Notes under the pieces: model-generated
What the model was told of the DNA's origin: nothing
The model's input: the letters and a program-made list of their open reading frames with translations, nothing else
The model's database searches: none
Program-made: the position numbers and the translations under genes
Source: Trichosphaerium sp. ATCC 40318
Lineage: Eukaryota; Protista; Tubulinea
NCBI GenBank assembly: GCA_038496445.1
Contig: JALMLS010000507.1
Span: forward strand, 620,001-684,000
Direction: 5' to 3'
DNA length: 64,000 nt
In this document: piece by piece, positions 1,958-61,154 of the stretch
How positions within the stretch are numbered: position 1 is the first letter of the stretch
Layout: the number at the start of each line of letters is the position of its first letter

Positions 1958-4900
1958 ATGAGCACAACGGACCTTGACAGTACGTATCTCTCTTCTTGTG
2001 CAATTAAAAACAAGTCTGATACCTTATAATTCCTTTACAAAGACCCAGCACCAACAGAATGGTCTTGAAAGCTCCGCCTTTTTGTTTTTTTCTACCTATG
2101 TCACCACCACTTTGTATTGCAAGTTCCTAATTGCCTTCTACTAGGTCCTCGCACATATTCCCCAAGCGGGTACTCCGATTCGGACTCAGGCAATAGCAAA
2201 TGCAAGGTCGGAAAAAAAACGTTCATCGCAGTGATTTCCACTTTGACCTTCATTTGCGTTTTGTGTCTTGCTGGCACCATTGCAATCGGGTCACTTCACT
2301 CATGGAAACACCTAAGCCAAAACGAACCAACCACCAACGATCCTGTCGTTGTATCGGAAGTTCCACAAACATCCTTCTCTCAATCCTTGGAGATTGATGA
2401 AACACAATATAACGAAGAAGATACCATTGCTGCGGTAGCCGAATCTCTCGGCGTCGATCCTTCCCAAGTCACTATTGACACGAGCAGTTCTAAACGTCAA
2501 ACAACAACTACTATCATTATCGTAATTACTGTACCTGAATCGGAAGGCGAAAAGCTAGAGGAAGCAGTAACAGCAATGTACGTCCAAGAATAGCTTTACA
2601 TCACACGTTTTTCATCTTGCTAACTCGGATATAGGAAGGATGATATGTCTGCTTTAAAGGCCGCTCTTGAGAGACGTGGTATAGATGCTACTTCGATTAC
2701 TCTCCCTGGAGAACTGGTTCACAATACGAACAGCACTGAAGTACCTACTTCAGCACCTACAGTGGCCATACAACATGTGCCTTTGGATATGTACACTGCT
2801 CTCGTGAACGAGTTTACAACTTTGCAAGCCAAAGTAGAAAAGCTTGAAGAACGCGCTCCTGTAGCTGGACCACAAGGTGAACCTGGACCACAAGGCGAAA
2901 CCGGAGAGAAAGGATTGTGTGTTGGCTTGTTAGCTGGTAATGTTATCCCAGTTGGTGGTAAAATATTCAAATGGGGCGGACATGTTGTGTCAGGAGGAAC
3001 AGTTTTAGTACGACGTCTTTTTTTATTTTCCTTTATTATTCCAGGTTTTTGTTTCGTTCGAGTTCTTACACTTTTTTACAGGATTTTCCAACCTATGACG
3101 TTAAAGTAGGTGATATTCTTCGTTTCTCAGCAAAGACAACGGCTGAGCACGTATTTCAAATCTTCGACATGGATGACTACACAAATTGTGTTAGGAACAC
3201 GAGCAACTTTGCAGTACTTGCTCTCAACGGTGTGATTCGTGGAACAAACTTCTTTGACTACAGAATCACTGAACTAGATTTGCAAAACACACCACTCATG
3301 TTTGCCGCTCTTAGCGGTTCAAACAATCCTCCTGCTACCCAATGTTTCAAAAATAAGGTGAAGACCCTAGTCAATGTTTTCCCAAGAACACAGGTCTCTA
3401 TCGCCGGCGGTGATGATGATTTGGCCGCAAACTCAGAGACAGTCCAGAAGCTCCAAGGTGTTGTTACAAAACTCTCACAGACTCTTATCCTCACACAACT
3501 TGCCATTGAAAAGCTTGTTAGTAGTAAGGGTGACTCTGGAATTACAGTAACACGCGGTGTTTACCAAGGTATGAAATCTTACAAAGATGGATCTTGGGGT
3601 ACATCTTCACTTCTCAATATCCACAATCACAACAACTACCGTGATTTGATTGGTATGGGTGAAATCTCAGCTGCCCTTAACGGTGTCGAATTTCAAACAC
3701 GCCACAACGATTACCAACTCGTTACACCATGTACCAACTCTGACGAGTATCATTGTACCGAGGTTATCGACTACCCAGATGTACCTCCAGAGGTACTAAA
3801 CGCTGGTACTGTTGATGAGCAAATCGCTGAGATGCAAGAATGGTTCAGAGCTTTCAAAGATCAAGTACGTTAAATAGAAAATAGAAGTGGTTTTGCTTTT
3901 TGCGGTTTGTGGAAGCTTACTCACTCTTTATTAAGGATTACTCAGTCCGTGACTACCGCCCATATTTCAGACCTGTACTGTCGTACCTCGAAGGTACTTG
4001 GGTTACTTCAGACTTGAAGGAACCGTTTGCTTCTGATCGTCATTTCATTGATGCAAAGAACTGGAAAGACTTGTATGATAAAACGACATACTTGCACAAT
4101 TCAGGACACAAAGACAGAAGAGAAAATGTACCATACCTCCCAAGTACGCTTATTTTTTACCTTTCTTATATATTTGCCGTCTTTGTGACCACTCGTTTGT
4201 TACTTACAACGCCCTAATAGCTAGTATTCGCGGTTTGGTTAACGATACTGATCCTATTGTTGCCAACTGGGAGTATCGTATTGTTACTGTGCCTCTAGAA
4301 GAAGATATTCCTACAAACAAATTACGTGTTTCTCAGGATCTTTCAAGACAACTTCTTGAGAATGTACCACGTACATTAAATCAGCTTAAATTGTCTCGTT
4401 CTGCCAGGTTCGAATTGAATCGCGCTGTATACAGTAACGGATCAGTAAGATTCACAGATACTTTTGATGAATGTACGTACTTTGCACTGCACTCTCGAAA
4501 CATTATGCTCACTTTGAAAACCTTAGCTCGCCACAGTTGGGATTACCTTGATTATATTATGGAGCAAGTTCCTGGTAAAGATAACGCTGGAGCTTTTATT
4601 GCCGATTCCTACGGACAATTCGCTACACTTCACCCAAGAACAAATCAACCTCTCAACGCTGCATACTACAACAGATACTACAAGTCTCTTCAGAATGATG
4701 CTATGGGCGCACCTGTCTTTGCACGTGGGTTCCATGATATGAACCTCTTCGTTGCAAGAACAACACAAGACAAAGTATCATCAAACTCTATGCTTGATGC
4801 AACTTGTAACGTAACTGCTGACCCTGATGAGTGTTCTGACAGTGACTTTGGTAGTGTACGTACAACAAAATGGAGTTATGCCATTCCACTCGGTACGCTT

Positions 4901-54573: not shown

Positions 54574-57500
54574 ATGAAAAAAAATACAAGCAACCAGAAT
54601 GTAGCAGCGAAGCCAAAATACACAAATACAGCTGTAAGATTTAAGTCGGGTGGAGGCCGTCAAAATGGTGGTAAGCGGAAAATACTGAGCCCACGAATAT
54701 AAAATACGCCGTGGTGTGCCGTTTATGCTATATTTAAAGCGAAATAATCAATTCTTGGCTTTTTTCAAAATCACTTGCTGTTGGGCGTTCTACCAAACCC
54801 ACTCGTTCTCAAAACCCACGAATTTTTTGTTTCTTATCAAGTGATCTTGTCTCAATGAATTAATCAGCGTTTTTTCTGGTTGGTTATTAGTATTTGGGTT
54901 GCAACCGCGTATACGTATAAATTAATGTAGTTAATCAAAAATGTAGGTTATGCTCATAAAAACAAGCGCTACGTTGTTCTGGGCAATACACGAAAATCCA
55001 ACAGAGACAAGCGCGCTGCACCGTCTGCTCCAAAGCCAATCCATTTGGGTTCTCTCAAAAGCGAGAATGCCGGAGTTGATCCTACTGTCACTCTTGTTAA
55101 GGTACGTAACCGCACTAGCGCAATACAACGAATCCGTACATATTTTTTGCACCACTTTAAAGGGTTTTGATTGTGTTGGTATTTTTTTTTTCCTTTTTTA
55201 CGATGCCTTGCTAACTGTTGATAGCCTGGTGGTTGGGGAAGCGTATCACACGAAGGAAATGTACGCTAAATGAAAAATTTTCATTTTAAAGATTTTGGTT
55301 TTTTATTGCCTTACGCGCAATACATTGATTTTGACTCATATCACAGGAAGGAGAAAGCTCAAACGCGAACACAAGTGCCGATCACGAAACACAACCTTCG
55401 CCGTGGGGTAACGTAGCGCCTGATGCACCTCCCGAGGCCCAACAGAGGCCGCAAGAGGTTAAACAGCAGCAAAATACAACTCAACCCAAACCACAGCAAA
55501 CGTCAAGTTTATATAAACCACCTACAAAAGGCAGAGGTGGTAGAGGTATATAGGATTTTTTGTAAACTCATTTTTATTCTAAAGACCTGATTGTAGAATT
55601 ACCTCCTCGCCGCGATGGCTTTAGCGTCAGTGCTCACTCTTTTCCTACACTTGGCGATTCTAAAGAACCTGAGCAACAACAACAAGCTCAACCTCCTGTC
55701 CAAGCGCCAATGCAAAATGAGCGCTTCCGTGGACATGATTCTTATCGTCCTCCAGGAGATCGTGATGGTGGATCTCGCTTTGGTGGATCCCGTTACGGTG
55801 GTAGAGGCGATCGTGGTGATCGCTATGGCGATAGATACGGTGATAGAGGAGGTGACCGTCGATATGGCGGAGACAGATACGGTGATAGAGGTGATAGAGG
55901 TGATAGATATGGTGACCGAGGTGGTGATCGTTATGGAAGATATGATCGCGGCTATGGTCGTTCTGATGGTTATAACAACGGTTACAGGAATGACAAGTAC
56001 GACTCAAATCTTTTTTAATAGTGAAAACATGCTATATGTATGTTTCACTGCAGCACATGCATTTGTTCTACGGAATAGTATGAATTCTTTATTTACTGAA
56101 TTGTTTTATAGCTCCATGTTTAATGAACCAGGAATGCGGGACCCAACTCGCCCTCAAGGTGTCGTTATAATGCAAAAGCGAGCCAGAGGAACCAACAAAA
56201 AACACAAAGCAGAAGAAAATACTAACACCAACAAAGATAAATCAGCTAGTACACCACAAAATACGCGAGAGACGGTTACAAAACCTGTTACAAAATCTGT
56301 TACAAAACCAAGTAAACCAGTAGAAAAGCGTATTTTAAAGAAGGAAAAACCTCCTGCACCAAAACCAAAGCCTAAACCAGCTCCAATTCTACCAGATATT
56401 GAAGAACGAGCTAAATCTAGTATGAGTTGGGCGAACATGGGAGACGACGATGAGTACGTGATTATTTGTCCAAGATGTTGATTATCCTGATCCTTACGCT
56501 ATTTCTTTTTTGTAGATTGGATGATATAGACTTTCCAAGTGATCCTGTCGTTGAAGAGCCACGAGCTCCAAGCCCTAAGAAGACACAACCACCAAAGGAA
56601 GTACAAAAACCAATACGTACTCCTCAAGAGCAAGATCGTCAGCGCAAGCTCGTACGCCCCTTAAATGACTTTTATGTCAATCCAGAGATAATATTAACGC
56701 TCTAATAGGCTGAAGAGCGTGACCGTGCTGAAGAGGCCAGGAAAAAGCGTCTCGAAGAAATCAAGACCATAGAAGCTGAGCGAAGGGTTTTACTTGAACA
56801 AAAACGCAAGGAAGAGGATGAAAAACGGCGTGCACAACAAGCCATTATGGCAAAGAAGCAAGAGGAAGAGCGACAGCGCTTATCTCAAATGCCAATTCTC
56901 ATGAAAGAACGTGCAAAAGAAAAAGCACGCCTCAGGAAGCAAGAAGAAGATCGCATAGAAGCTGAAAGAAAAGCAAGAAGCGCAGCAAAACTACGTGTAT
57001 GTAAAAGGTGATTTGTTTTTATGGTTATTGATAGTATACTGTAGGAATTGGAAGCTAGAATCAAAGCTGAAGAAGACGCAGAGCGTAAAAAGCGAGAAGA
57101 AGCAGCAGCTGAAAGAGCAGCTAAACTAGCTGCTCAAGCACCTATTAGAATCAAGAGACGTGAAGCCCAACAGCCTCAAGAGGGTGATAAAGATAGCAAA
57201 GGCGATGACAAACAAGATAAGAAGTTTGAGCGTAGGAATCCACAAGATAGACGTGATAATCGCCGAGACTACAGAAATGAACGTAACAACAGAAATGGTG
57301 AAGATAATAGAGATCGCCGATCTGGAAATAGGCGTGGTGACGATAGAGACTATGATGGCAATGGTCAAGGAAGAAGAAACGATCGTCAAGATACACGCCA
57401 AGCGCGTGAACCTACAGAAGCTGATAAAGCATCTACTTGGCGTTCTGATCGACCTGCTAAGAAGCCACAACCTAAGTCCCAACGTAACACACGCACGTTC

Positions 57501-60500
57501 AAGGATGGCAAGCGCAGAGGCGATAAACAAGCTAAGTTTGGTGGCAAAAAGCGCGAAGAAGCCAAGCCAGAAGAAAAAAAAACAAAGCTTGTTTACAAAG
57601 CCAAGGAACCCAAAATGAAATATGTTGCAAAGAGCGAGCTTCGCAAGATGGAACAGGAGAAAAAAGAGAAGCTTGAGAGTGAAGCTGGAAAAGAGAACAA
57701 AAGCCAAAACGAAAAGCAACAACCTCCTCAAGAAAAGACCTCTAATGAAAGACGCATGAACAAAGAGCGCAACAACAGAGGTAGAAATCAAAGAAATGGC
57801 AATCAAAGAGATAATAATGATGGCGATTTCGAAGACTCAAAGCCAAGAAATGACAGGAATGACAGAAATGACAGAAACAACAGGCGGAATAAGGACAGAA
57901 AATCGCGATACGAAAAACGTGGTACGTTTTTTTTTTCTTACTTTTACGTACCAAAATCAAATGTCAACTGAAGTCTGACAATACTTTCAATTATTTGCTT
58001 TGTTCGCAACACTTAAAGCTTATTCTACTACCAGATGGCCAAAAGAAGCCAAAAACTCGTATGGCCTACGTGCCAAAGGCCAAGGTGCAGATTACAACTG
58101 TATCTGACTCCAAACCCACATCAAAGGCTACAAACGTGTCAAAAGCTGTAAAAGAAGTTACGCCACCGCGGAAAACTGACAAACAGCAAAATACTGAGCG
58201 TAAACCTCAAATCGTCAAGGGCTTTGATTTAACTGGTGATGCTCCTATTCTACCTTCAGGCGTAGTAGTGGTGAACGAACAACCTGGTATCGAGCATAAT
58301 GATGACGATGGCGAGTGGAACGTCGCTAAGACCAACGGTCAAAAACGACGTGAAAAAGCGCTTGAACGTGCCAAAGAGCGTAAAGGAGTACGTTCTATTT
58401 TTTTACCATATTTTCTTCACTTTTTCCATTTTATTGGCGCTTTTTTACCCTTTCTTTTTGATAAAAATGATTACGAGCGATTAACGCTCGGCGAACTGCT
58501 GAACCTCTGTGAGCACAAGAACTTTCTCCCTGATTTATTTTAAAAGCCATACAAGTTTCGACTGTTTACTCGCTTTGTGTCAATCCTAATGTCTTCTTCT
58601 AGAACCGTAACGCTGCAAGAGCCAAGCGTGGGGATAACCACTACAAGAAAGACCAAAAGAAGCAGCCTCCACGGCAACAAAAGAAACAAGTTGTAGCCGA
58701 ACCACAAACGGAGGAAATCTCACTTCCTGTTGTTACTGCCTCGACACAAGAGAATGTGGTCACTCTCAAGATCTCTGTATCTCAGAACAGTGTTGTAGAA
58801 GCTCCATGGTCGGTACCTGCTACGCCTCCGAAGCAAGCAAAAGTCTTTCTGTCTGAAATAATGCAAGAGCAAATTACCCAAGCTGATGAACCTGAACCTG
58901 AAAAAGAGGTCATTGCTGAAGTTGAGGTAAAACGCGAAAAGCCAAAGCGGAATAAAGACCGTAAGCAGAAAGACAGAAACACCAAGGGCAATGCAAAGGG
59001 TAATAACAACGAGAACCAAGGCAACAGAAAAGGTACGAAAGAGCTCTTTTTAAAACTTGTTTTATCTCCTCTTTTTTTTTTCTTTTCGTTGCTGCAATGA
59101 TGTTTGTGGAAGAGCCGTCAGAGTTTATGTGCTGATATTTTTCCAAAATCGAAGAATCTAATAAAACTGCTGAAGTAGCATAAAACACCAAAAATCTATT
59201 CTCTTTTTTCCTCTTTTGCTTCACGTGCTGATATTGTTCAAAGGTCGTCAACAGGCAAAGTTCAAAAACGAGAGAAAACCAACGAAGCAAAAGCCTAAGA
59301 AGACTAAACCTAAAACAACCAGCAAGTGGCTGCCAAAGGCTAAGAAACCCGTTGAACAGCCTCAACAAGAGGTGAAGGCAACCGAGGATGCACCTGCAGT
59401 TACAGAGAAGCCTGTTAAAGCCGACAAGCCAGTAGCCGAAACAAAGCCTGTAGAGGCTCCTATCGTGAAGCCATCACCTGTTCGCCCTGTAACAAATGCT
59501 CCAATTGCAAAAATCACTGTACACAATTCTGCAGTTATAAAGAAGGATGAGCCTGAAGTCAAGCAAGAACCTGTTGCTGCTCCTGTACACAGACCTTCTT
59601 CTGCTGGAGGCGAAAAGCAACCTGCTCAAACACAGGCAGCTGTCCACGCCAACCGTGCTCCTCAGCGCCCTGTTTCAGCACCTGCACGGTACGTCTTTAA
59701 ACCTTTTTGCTTTTTTTGGACTTTCATGTCCATGAATTTCGAAAAACACAACTTCGCGATGATTATCTATTATGCTGTTACCCGACAGACCTTGCAGTGG
59801 TGACCATTCTCTCTGAGAAACCCTACTGAGATCTAAAAAAAAACCAGCTTTTTTTTTGTTCCTTCGTTATCAATGCTCTGACGTACCTAATAGGACTCAC
59901 CAGCCTCAAATAGCTGCTGTCAACACACTTTTGACACCGTCGCCTATCAGACCACTCCCGAATGAAGCCTACAATCCTCCTTTGGGACAAGATATGCGAA
60001 CAGCTGTTGTTCAACAACAACAACCTTATAATCCACAAGCAGCTGGTGCTTGGGGTACTCAGTACTACACTACACAAGCTCCATTCCAAGCACAAGGTTA
60101 CTCTCAGCCGTCCATGTTTGTTCACTTCTCATCACCTGGCGCCTTCACGACACCATACGGAGTTGCTTACGCTCCTCAGCAACACTCCAATGGCGGCATT
60201 GTTGGTTATGCTCCTCAACAACAATTCATTGCTCCTGGATCAACCCAGCACACCATGGCTGCGCAACAAGCGAACTTGGGCATGGAACAAGGTATGTTAA
60301 AGCAACGTTTTATTACCTTTTATGTTCACTTCTCTAAATTTTCTTTTAGGTGCTAAGTACTCTAACGATCAAGGTTTACTCCGTGCTCGTTGGTCTATGG
60401 GTACTTCTATTGCTGTTCCTCAGCAAGTCATGTCTGATAATATGGCAAGACATCACGGTGCCCAGATACGAGCTCAGCCTATTGAGAGGCCACAAACACT

Positions 60501-61154
60501 CGATACACAACCCACATCATACCAGGATGGTAGACTTACCTCCAACTTGACACATACTGCTGTTGGTCCTCGTGGCGGCAACACTCGCTCTCAATTTTAT
60601 AGGCGAAATGCCAATGTCCATAGAGAACATGGTAGAGATCAACCTCAACGACAAACTGCAACGAATCAAGGGCTATCTCAAGCGCAAGTAGCTGGACAAG
60701 TGCGGTCCCAGGGACAGGCCCAGAACTCTTTTAAAAAGTCTGATCGTGACGAACCAGTTCGATCAAAGAATAAAAAGAGAGATGCTGCTCCAGATAACCA
60801 ACCAAATCCACCTACAAAGTCACGACAAAACAACTCACGTTCAAAGCAGTCTTCATCCTCTGGGAACAACTCTTCAGATCAGAGTGGATCATCTCGAGGT
60901 AATAACCGAGGGAACAAATCTAACAGAGGTACGTTTTGATTCTTGCATCGATGCCAAGTTTTTTTTGTTGTTCTGTTCTCTAAATGATTTCTTCAGGACG
61001 AAATAACCGTGGCCGTGGTAGAGGTAGAGGGAAAGGGCGTTCTGGACAGAAAACTGGAAATGCCAATTCGCAGACTCGCTCAAAGAACACAAAATCGGGC
61101 AACACCAAAATGGTTTACAAACCAAAGGCGAAGCCTACCGAGGCTACGAAATAA
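54574..61154 (+). CDS. PRRC2: PRRC2/BAT2/MOS1-like disordered RNA-binding protein; snoRNA host
   Basis: BAT2_N motif APKPIHLGSLKSENAGVDPTVTLVKPGGWG; SWANMGDDD; coiled coil ending ERKARSAAKLRELE; RG/RGG-rich and Q-rich regions. Confidence 0.8.
55755..55990 (+). repeat. Coding (GDRYGDRG)n repeat
   Basis: Repeated GGTGATAGA/GGTGATCG units translating to GDRG/GDRY. Confidence 0.9.
58461..58538 (+). ncRNA. Candidate intronic C/D-box snoRNA
   Basis: ATAAA/TTTAT terminal stem, box C ATGATTA (58467), D' CTGA (58499), C'-like GTGAGC (58509), box D CTGA (58530), inside intron about 58389-58602. Confidence 0.65.
59090..59180 (+). ncRNA. SNORD49: Intronic C/D-box snoRNA, U49/SNORD49-like
   Basis: 6-bp terminal stem TGCTGC/GTAGCA, box C ATGATG (59097), guide GGAAGAGCCG (59108-59117) complementary to conserved LSU CGGCUCUUCC, D' CAGA (59119), box D CTGA (59170). 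Confidence 0.8.
59753..59819 (+). ncRNA. Candidate intronic C/D-box snoRNA
   Basis: Box C GATGATTA (59758), guide CTGTTACCCG before D' CAGA (59786), box D CTGA (59813), short TTC/GAA stem, inside intron about 59689-59893. Confidence 0.65.

Follow-up and report, generated by a model that had tools for sequence, protein, structure and literature searches.

Box C/D small nucleolar RNAs (snoRNAs) directing the 2′-O-methylation of ribosomal RNA (rRNA) are well described in yeast and vertebrates, and those relevant here are yeast snR58 and human SNORD104, vertebrate SNORD49 (U49) with its Plasmodium counterpart snoR28, and yeast snR52, the guide for 18S Am420. In animals and plants, hosts such as GAS5, RPL13A and PRRC2A (with SNORA38) carry one snoRNA in each of several consecutive introns. 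We analyzed a stretch of 64,000 nucleotides (nt) from the marine amoeba Trichosphaerium sp. ATCC 40318 (assembly GCA_038496445.1, contig JALMLS010000507.1, positions 620,001 to 684,000 of the forward strand; hereafter the window). Three consecutive long introns of one gene very probably each encode one box C/D snoRNA (sno1, sno2 and sno3), whose 5′ guides would direct 2′-O-methylation of the organism's own rRNA at U831 and C3323 of the large subunit (LSU) and G721 of the small subunit (SSU). In kind, these are ordinary snoRNA genes in a well-known arrangement, found in a lineage that has been little studied.

A likeness in sequence to a described guide was observed for sno2. Its 5′ guide, GGAAGAGCCGU, followed by a D′ box CAGA, equals the SNORD49/snoR28 consensus GGAAGUGCCGUCAGA in all but one base, and this single difference makes the duplex of sno2 with its own target perfect. 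The predicted target is also the same, the C in GUCGGCUCUUCC (human 28S Cm4456), and SNORD49 is likewise intronic. The remaining sequence is unrelated, and the 3′ half of sno2 is longer. By guide and target, sno2 appears to be a functional analogue of SNORD49, and by score it is not a family member.

For the other two RNAs, the likeness lies in the predicted position. sno1 aims at the position homologous to the snR58/SNORD104 site, for which the yeast guide directs 25S Cm663 and the human one 28S Cm1327; however, the site base is U instead of C, and its box C is AUGAUUA. Because the sno1 guide pairs with an rRNA stretch that differs from that of yeast and human, it shows no sequence similarity to these guides and has no Rfam match. 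sno3 aims at the snR52 position in an 18S hairpin, where the site base is G; the amoeba hairpin is compensatorily changed and the guide follows. In addition, snR52 guides 25S U2921 by a second guide, whereas no such second target was found for sno3, and snR52 is independently transcribed in yeast, in contrast to the intronic sno3. In function, sno1, sno2 and sno3 would be counterparts of SNORD104/snR58, SNORD49 and snR52, respectively; at the level of sequence, none belongs to those Rfam families. Compared to the animal and plant hosts, the amoeba introns are usually very short, and those bearing snoRNAs are approximately four-fold longer.

Introns and box layout

The region read was 57800-60500, and assembled contigs from four public runs were aligned to 57500-60700 (Table 1). 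The initial annotation, made from the letters of the window, had proposed one unannotated box C/D snoRNA in each of three consecutive introns of about 200-215 nt, all with a pyrimidine-rich 5′ spacer, a box C variant (ATGATT or ATGATG), an internal CTGA or CAGA, a terminal CTGA about 70-80 nt from the 3′ splice site, and a closing stem. Most of this description was borne out. Spliced contigs gave intron lengths of 215, 211 and 205 nt, and three introns upstream in the same gene were approximately 47-62 nt long when read by eye. Pyrimidines make up 62-79% of the 5′ spacers versus 49% window-wide. The boxes were present as described, and the distance from the end of box D to the 3′ splice site was 69 nt in sno1, 70 nt in sno2, and 64 or 77 nt in sno3. 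Hirose and Steitz are said to have reported in 2001 a distance of 70-80 nt for vertebrate intronic box C/D snoRNAs, which the 64-77 nt seen here would fit. Closing stems were found in sno1 (AUAAA/UUUAU, 5 bp) and sno2 (UGCUGC/GUAGCA, 6 bp), and this part of the description did not hold for sno3.

The three RNAs share a common plan: box C, guide, box D′, 6-7 nt, box C′ (GUGNNNA), a spacer and box D. The distance between D′ and C′ is 6 nt in sno1 and sno2 and 7 nt in sno3. The spacer between C and D′, which contains the guide, is 25 nt long in sno1 and 15 nt in sno2, and 34 nt separate C′ from D in sno2. In sno3, both candidate D boxes (59813 and 59826) sit within CUGAGA. The CTGA at 59132 was also considered as the D′ box of sno2 and was rejected, as it has no target and fits the C′ box GUGCUGA better.

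Table 1. Coordinates of the host gene, its introns, the predicted snoRNAs and their genomic copies (positions are those of the window unless a contig is given)
Feature	Position	Strand	Description
Host gene	54946-60939	+	stop codon ends at 60939; exon translations open in one frame each; spliced contigs
Intron	57922-58034	+	113 nt, GT..AG, skipped by spliced contigs
Intron 1 of cluster, host of sno1	58388-58602	+	215 nt, GT..AG; spliced contigs of runs X1, X2, X3
sno1, box C/D snoRNA	58461-58538	+	~78 nt; boxes, guide duplex, paralogs
sno1 box C	58467-58473	+	AUGAUUA
sno1 D′ guide	58485-58498	+	
sno1 box D′	58499-58502	+	CUGA
sno1 box C′	58509-58515	+	GUGAGCA
sno1 box D	58530-58533	+	CUGA
Intron 2 of cluster, host of sno2	59033-59243	+	211 nt, GT..AG; spliced contigs of runs X1, X2
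sno2, box C/D snoRNA	59090-59180	+	~91 nt; boxes, guide duplex, SNORD49-like guide, paralogs
sno2 box C	59097-59103	+	AUGAUGU
sno2 D′ guide	59108-59117	+	GGAAGAGCCG
sno2 box D′	59119-59122	+	CAGA
sno2 box C′	59129-59135	+	GUGCUGA
sno2 box D	59170-59173	+	CUGA
Intron 3 of cluster, host of sno3	59689-59893	+	205 nt, GT..AG; spliced contigs of runs X1, X2, X5
sno3, box C/D snoRNA	59750-59832	+	~70-83 nt; boxes, guide duplex
sno3 box C	59756-59762 or 59759-59765	+	GCGAUGA or AUGAUUA
sno3 D′ guide	59773-59784	+	
sno3 box D′	59786-59789	+	CAGA
sno3 box C′	59797-59803	+	GUGGUGA
sno3 box D	59813-59816 or 59826-59829	+	CUGA
Intron	60292-60349	+	58 nt, GT..AG, skipped by spliced contigs
sno1 copies	L010:1500-1575 and L011:1500-1572, contig C22		86-87% identity; ~9 kb apart
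sno2 copy	L013:1501-1584, contig C39		98% identity
sno2 copy	L014:1501-1582, contig C2	minus	94% identity

Guide duplexes and predicted rRNA sites

The ribosomal DNA (rDNA) was reached by way of the predicted sno2 target, GATGTCGGCTCTTCCTATC, a pattern with 17 genomic occurrences. One rDNA unit on contig C592 was typed by Rfam, with an SSU gene of 2652 nt and an LSU gene of 3621 nt. Guides were compared with this rRNA, a check that the initial annotation had suggested, by an ungapped search anchored at the box, and the site was taken as the target nucleotide that faces the fifth position of the guide, counted back from the box. All three D′ guides formed perfect Watson-Crick duplexes: 14 pairs for sno1 (LSU 828-841, site U831), 10 for sno2 (LSU 3320-3329, site C3323) and 12 for sno3 (SSU 718-729, site G721). 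In each duplex, pairing sets in at position 2 before D′.

As a control, the same scoring was applied to all CTGA and CAGA motifs of the window, with both strands counted (n=894). A match of 14 bp was reached once, by sno1, and one of 12 bp twice, by sno3 and by an AG-rich coding site; two further motifs reached 11 bp, and 16 reached exactly 10 bp, sno2 included. With these ranks, first and joint second of 894, the matches of sno1 and sno3 are significant by themselves. For sno2, the match alone does not reach significance, and the case for it rests on the near-identity of its guide to that of SNORD49 and on its paralogs. Unanchored rRNA complements of 13-15 nt elsewhere in the window occurred at about the chance rate; they were AT-rich and without boxes, and were rejected as guides.

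The 3′ guides, located before box D, showed weak rRNA matches only (9 bp including a G-U pair, 10 positions including a mismatch, and 8 bp plus 3). At its best, the sno2 3′ guide matches SSU 1743-1752, with a mismatch at position 4, beside the would-be site. A second SSU guide in sno2 is therefore unsupported, the match being weak and its positions varying among paralogs. That the positions just before box D differ among paralogs suggests that the 3′ guides, which have no convincing target, are probably idle.

With regard to known sites, U831 lies between GAAACACGGAUCAAGGAGU and CGCCGAGCG; it follows the U18 target, the A of ACGG in GAAACACGG, at a distance of 14 nt. We take the same 14-nt offset to separate yeast A649 from C663 and human A1313 from C1327, and U831 would presumably occupy the position of yeast 25S Cm663 and human 28S Cm1327. 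SNORD104 has been listed for 28S C1327 (PMC3766210), and methylation of C663 is conserved between yeast and human (PMC9418376). C3323, which belongs to the peptidyl-transferase region, is found in the context GAUGUCGGCUCUUCC (GAUGUCGG, then the C itself and UCUUCC), 42 nt before the A-loop UGU. Counting back 42 from human U4498, we take this nucleotide to be C4456. SNORD49A/B has been reported as the guide for Cm4456, which was Cm4426 in the old numbering (PMC9941101). In the Rfam SSU model, G721 aligns with position 422, the first A of the consensus GGAAGG. By way of the U14 guide for C414, it presumably corresponds to yeast 18S A420. This A420 is guided by snR52 (PMC9418376). The letter and offset checks of all three equivalences pass. 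At U831 and G721, both the modified base and the adjoining rRNA have diverged from the consensus, and it is the amoeba version that the guides match.

The rRNA of this organism has features of its own. The SSU gene (L005:4453 to L006:1104) is 2652 nt long versus the 1831-position model, indicating large inserts, and several of the chance 13-15-mer matches to the window fall in its AT-rich parts. The SSU 530-loop (L005:5290-5330, contig C592) reads GUGCCAGCACCCGCGGUAAC in place of the almost universal GUGCCAGCAGCCGCGGUAAU, and its upstream partner stretch reads GGAGGACAAGUUGGG versus the consensus GGAGGGCAAGUCUGG. Because the 530 loop differs, a 515F-type pattern had no match in the genome.

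Paralogs and alternative explanations

Additional copies of sno1 and sno2 were detected elsewhere in the genome (Table 1), and sno3 was present in a single genomic copy. In alignments that included the flanks, identity between paralogs starts at the terminal stem and stops shortly past box D, with unrelated sequence on either side. No change was seen in boxes C, D′, C′ and D or in the D′ guides, and box C is AUGAUUA in all three sno1 copies. The sno2 terminal stem UGCUGC/GUAGCA is replaced by AAUAC/GUAUU in paralogs, a compensatory change. Both C22 copies and the C2 copy are located in introns of the same layout, with box D 67, 73 and 100 nt before the acceptor, respectively. The C22 copies probably occupy separate introns of one acidic-repeat protein gene, and the intron with the C2 copy splits a motif of a PPP-family phosphatase (...SAPNYCYR, then CGNVAAILEL...). 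A metagenome scan with the sno1 guide plus D′ yielded 96 loci, in which at most 22 of 65 flanking positions were identical; they revealed no relatives and were rejected as chance matches in unrelated DNA.

Several observations weigh against the assignment of the three introns as snoRNA hosts. The Rfam comparison proposed in the initial annotation returned no family for them: the window had no match at the gathering threshold, and the E-value mode on 2.8 kb gave noise only (long non-coding RNA and glmS matches at E 0.4-8). A permissive search run on each candidate alone scored SNORD49 (RF00277) on sno2 at 11 bits versus a gathering score of 37, SNORD28 on sno1 at 13.6 bits versus 50 needed, and SNORD65 on sno3 at 14 bits versus 41 needed. 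The similarity of sno3 to SNORD65 and to Afu_294 is weak and extends over the boxes only. sno2 also matches Plasmodium snoR28 below threshold (15 bits), and its guide GGAAGAGCCGUCAGA is one base off the consensus of both this family and SNORD49. Each C box is one position off RUGAUGA, and in sno1 the deviation abolishes the G6-C1 pair of stem II. sno1 also contains a 6-bp hairpin directly 3′ of box C (58474-58490, CGAGCG-AUUAA-CGCUCG), the 3′ arm of which masks half of the guide. Taken alone, the 10-bp match of sno2 is no rarity, with 21 of the 894 boxes reaching 10 bp, and sno3 lacks both a terminal stem and a paralog and has an ambiguous D box. The equivalences with yeast and human numbering rest on letter and offset checks and are inferred.

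Transcript data bear on the same question. No discrete small RNA was seen in the assembled contigs, which probably derive from poly(A) libraries and represent mostly spliced mRNA, and neither sno2 in intron 2 nor sno3 in intron 3 was covered by a contig from any of the four runs. Run X2 includes one contig of 166 nt, with an Illumina adapter at both ends, that covers 58450-58576; it lies wholly within intron 1 and spans sno1 and its flanks. This contig may stem from a lariat or from an intermediate of processing, and offers weak evidence for the persistence of an intron piece with sno1 in it.

The initial annotation had also suggested that box C is lineage-specific, which was not supported. 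The box C of sno2, AUGAUGU, is near-canonical, that of sno3 allows the reading GCGAUGA, and that of the Rfam SNORD28 consensus is also GAUGAUUU; the variant is therefore not clearly peculiar to this lineage. A related proposal concerns sno1, whose paralogs retain the guide-masking hairpin in a 5-bp form with a different loop. The kink-turn might tolerate loss of the stem II G6-C1 pair (AUGAUUA in three sno1 paralogs) and the conserved hairpin might mask half of the guide, in which case methylation of LSU U831 would depend on unwinding and might be subject to regulation. Such features would represent a lineage-specific architecture of the snoRNA-protein complex and not mere drift; we consider this unlikely.

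Among the alternatives, the one that survives best accepts genuine box C/D RNAs and supposes that at least one of them is mainly a pre-rRNA folding chaperone, or acts on small nuclear RNA, transfer RNA or mRNA via its 3′ guide. This appears improbable to us. It would agree with the lack of good rRNA matches of the 3′ guides, with the mismatched position 4 in the SSU 1743-1752 match of sno2, and with the masking of the sno1 guide by its internal hairpin. However, the 3′ guides vary among paralogs exactly beside box D, which argues against a conserved target there, and no variation is seen in the 5′ guides, which follow the D′+5 rule at known sites.

It is very hard to believe that the introns are merely long, with boxes and complementarities arising by chance and no stable RNA produced. 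The top two of the 894 boxes are the anchored guides of 14 and 12 bp, all three predicted sites fall at presumed equivalents of positions methylated in yeast or human, and paralogs in unrelated introns keep exactly the RNA body, with covariation in the sno2 stem. These results outweigh, in our opinion, the points that chance would explain, namely the absence of an Rfam match at the gathering score, the short and degenerate boxes, the commonness of 10-bp anchored matches in the window, and the candidates in introns 2 and 3 having no covering contig. Hardly any credence can be given to the idea that the long introns are splicing-regulatory or autoregulatory elements of the host with secondary snoRNA-like parts, as might be suggested by the uniform 64-77 nt to the 3′ splice site and the pyrimidine-rich 5′ spacers, because these RNAs are also found within introns of genes unrelated to the host (for example, the PPP-family phosphatase on C2 and the gene on C22), where similarity is confined to the RNA, showing that the conserved unit is the RNA and not a host-specific element.

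If the three introns encode methylation guides, as we favor, exonucleolytic trimming of the intron spliced from the host transcript would release each snoRNA. Snu13, Nop56, Nop58 and fibrillarin would bind the C/D and C′/D′ kink-turns and protect the RNA. The 5′ guide upstream of D′ would then pair with the organism's own rRNA and bring the nucleotide that faces its fifth position from the box into the fibrillarin active site for 2′-O-methylation.

Host gene and implications

The host gene codes for a long, basic, low-complexity protein, which the initial annotation had called PRRC2-like. This label found partial support: BAT2_N (PF07001) was the sole Pfam match of the N-terminal exon (54946-55104), but the likeness is weak and below the cut-off (E 0.04, 14.7 bits versus 25), and the other exons, searched singly against Pfam in six pieces, had no match. 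A relationship of the host to BAT2/PRRC2 proteins is therefore plausible and unproven. Vertebrate PRRC2 genes carry other snoRNAs, SNORA38 and SNORD62, which differ from those of the amoeba host; thus, any link between the hosts, which the initial annotation took to be conserved or convergently chosen, would be coincidence or convergence and not orthology. A literature search for PRRC2B together with SNORD62 found no paper, and one for PRRC2A and SNORA38 found co-occurrence in locus lists only.

Two other features of the gene were observed. The intron at 57922-58034 is, with 113 nt, twice the usual length. It contains tandem CTGA motifs, yet no box C and no rRNA complementarity were found in it, and it was rejected as a snoRNA host. 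In the exon at 59433, the X1 and X2 contigs have a 3-nt insertion (AGC) and several substitutions compared to the window, which points to strain or allele variation.

In this study, three annotated methylation guides and their paralog copies are added where Rfam finds none, and three rRNA modification sites are predicted in a poorly studied marine amoeba. Current understanding of snoRNAs is unchanged by these results. For annotation, introns approximately four times the usual length reliably flag snoRNA genes in this genome. The predicted sites also provide a clean example in which the position of a modification is kept while the modified base and the adjoining rRNA have changed, with the guide following. 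This fits the view that selection maintains the position of 2′-O-methylation and not the local sequence.

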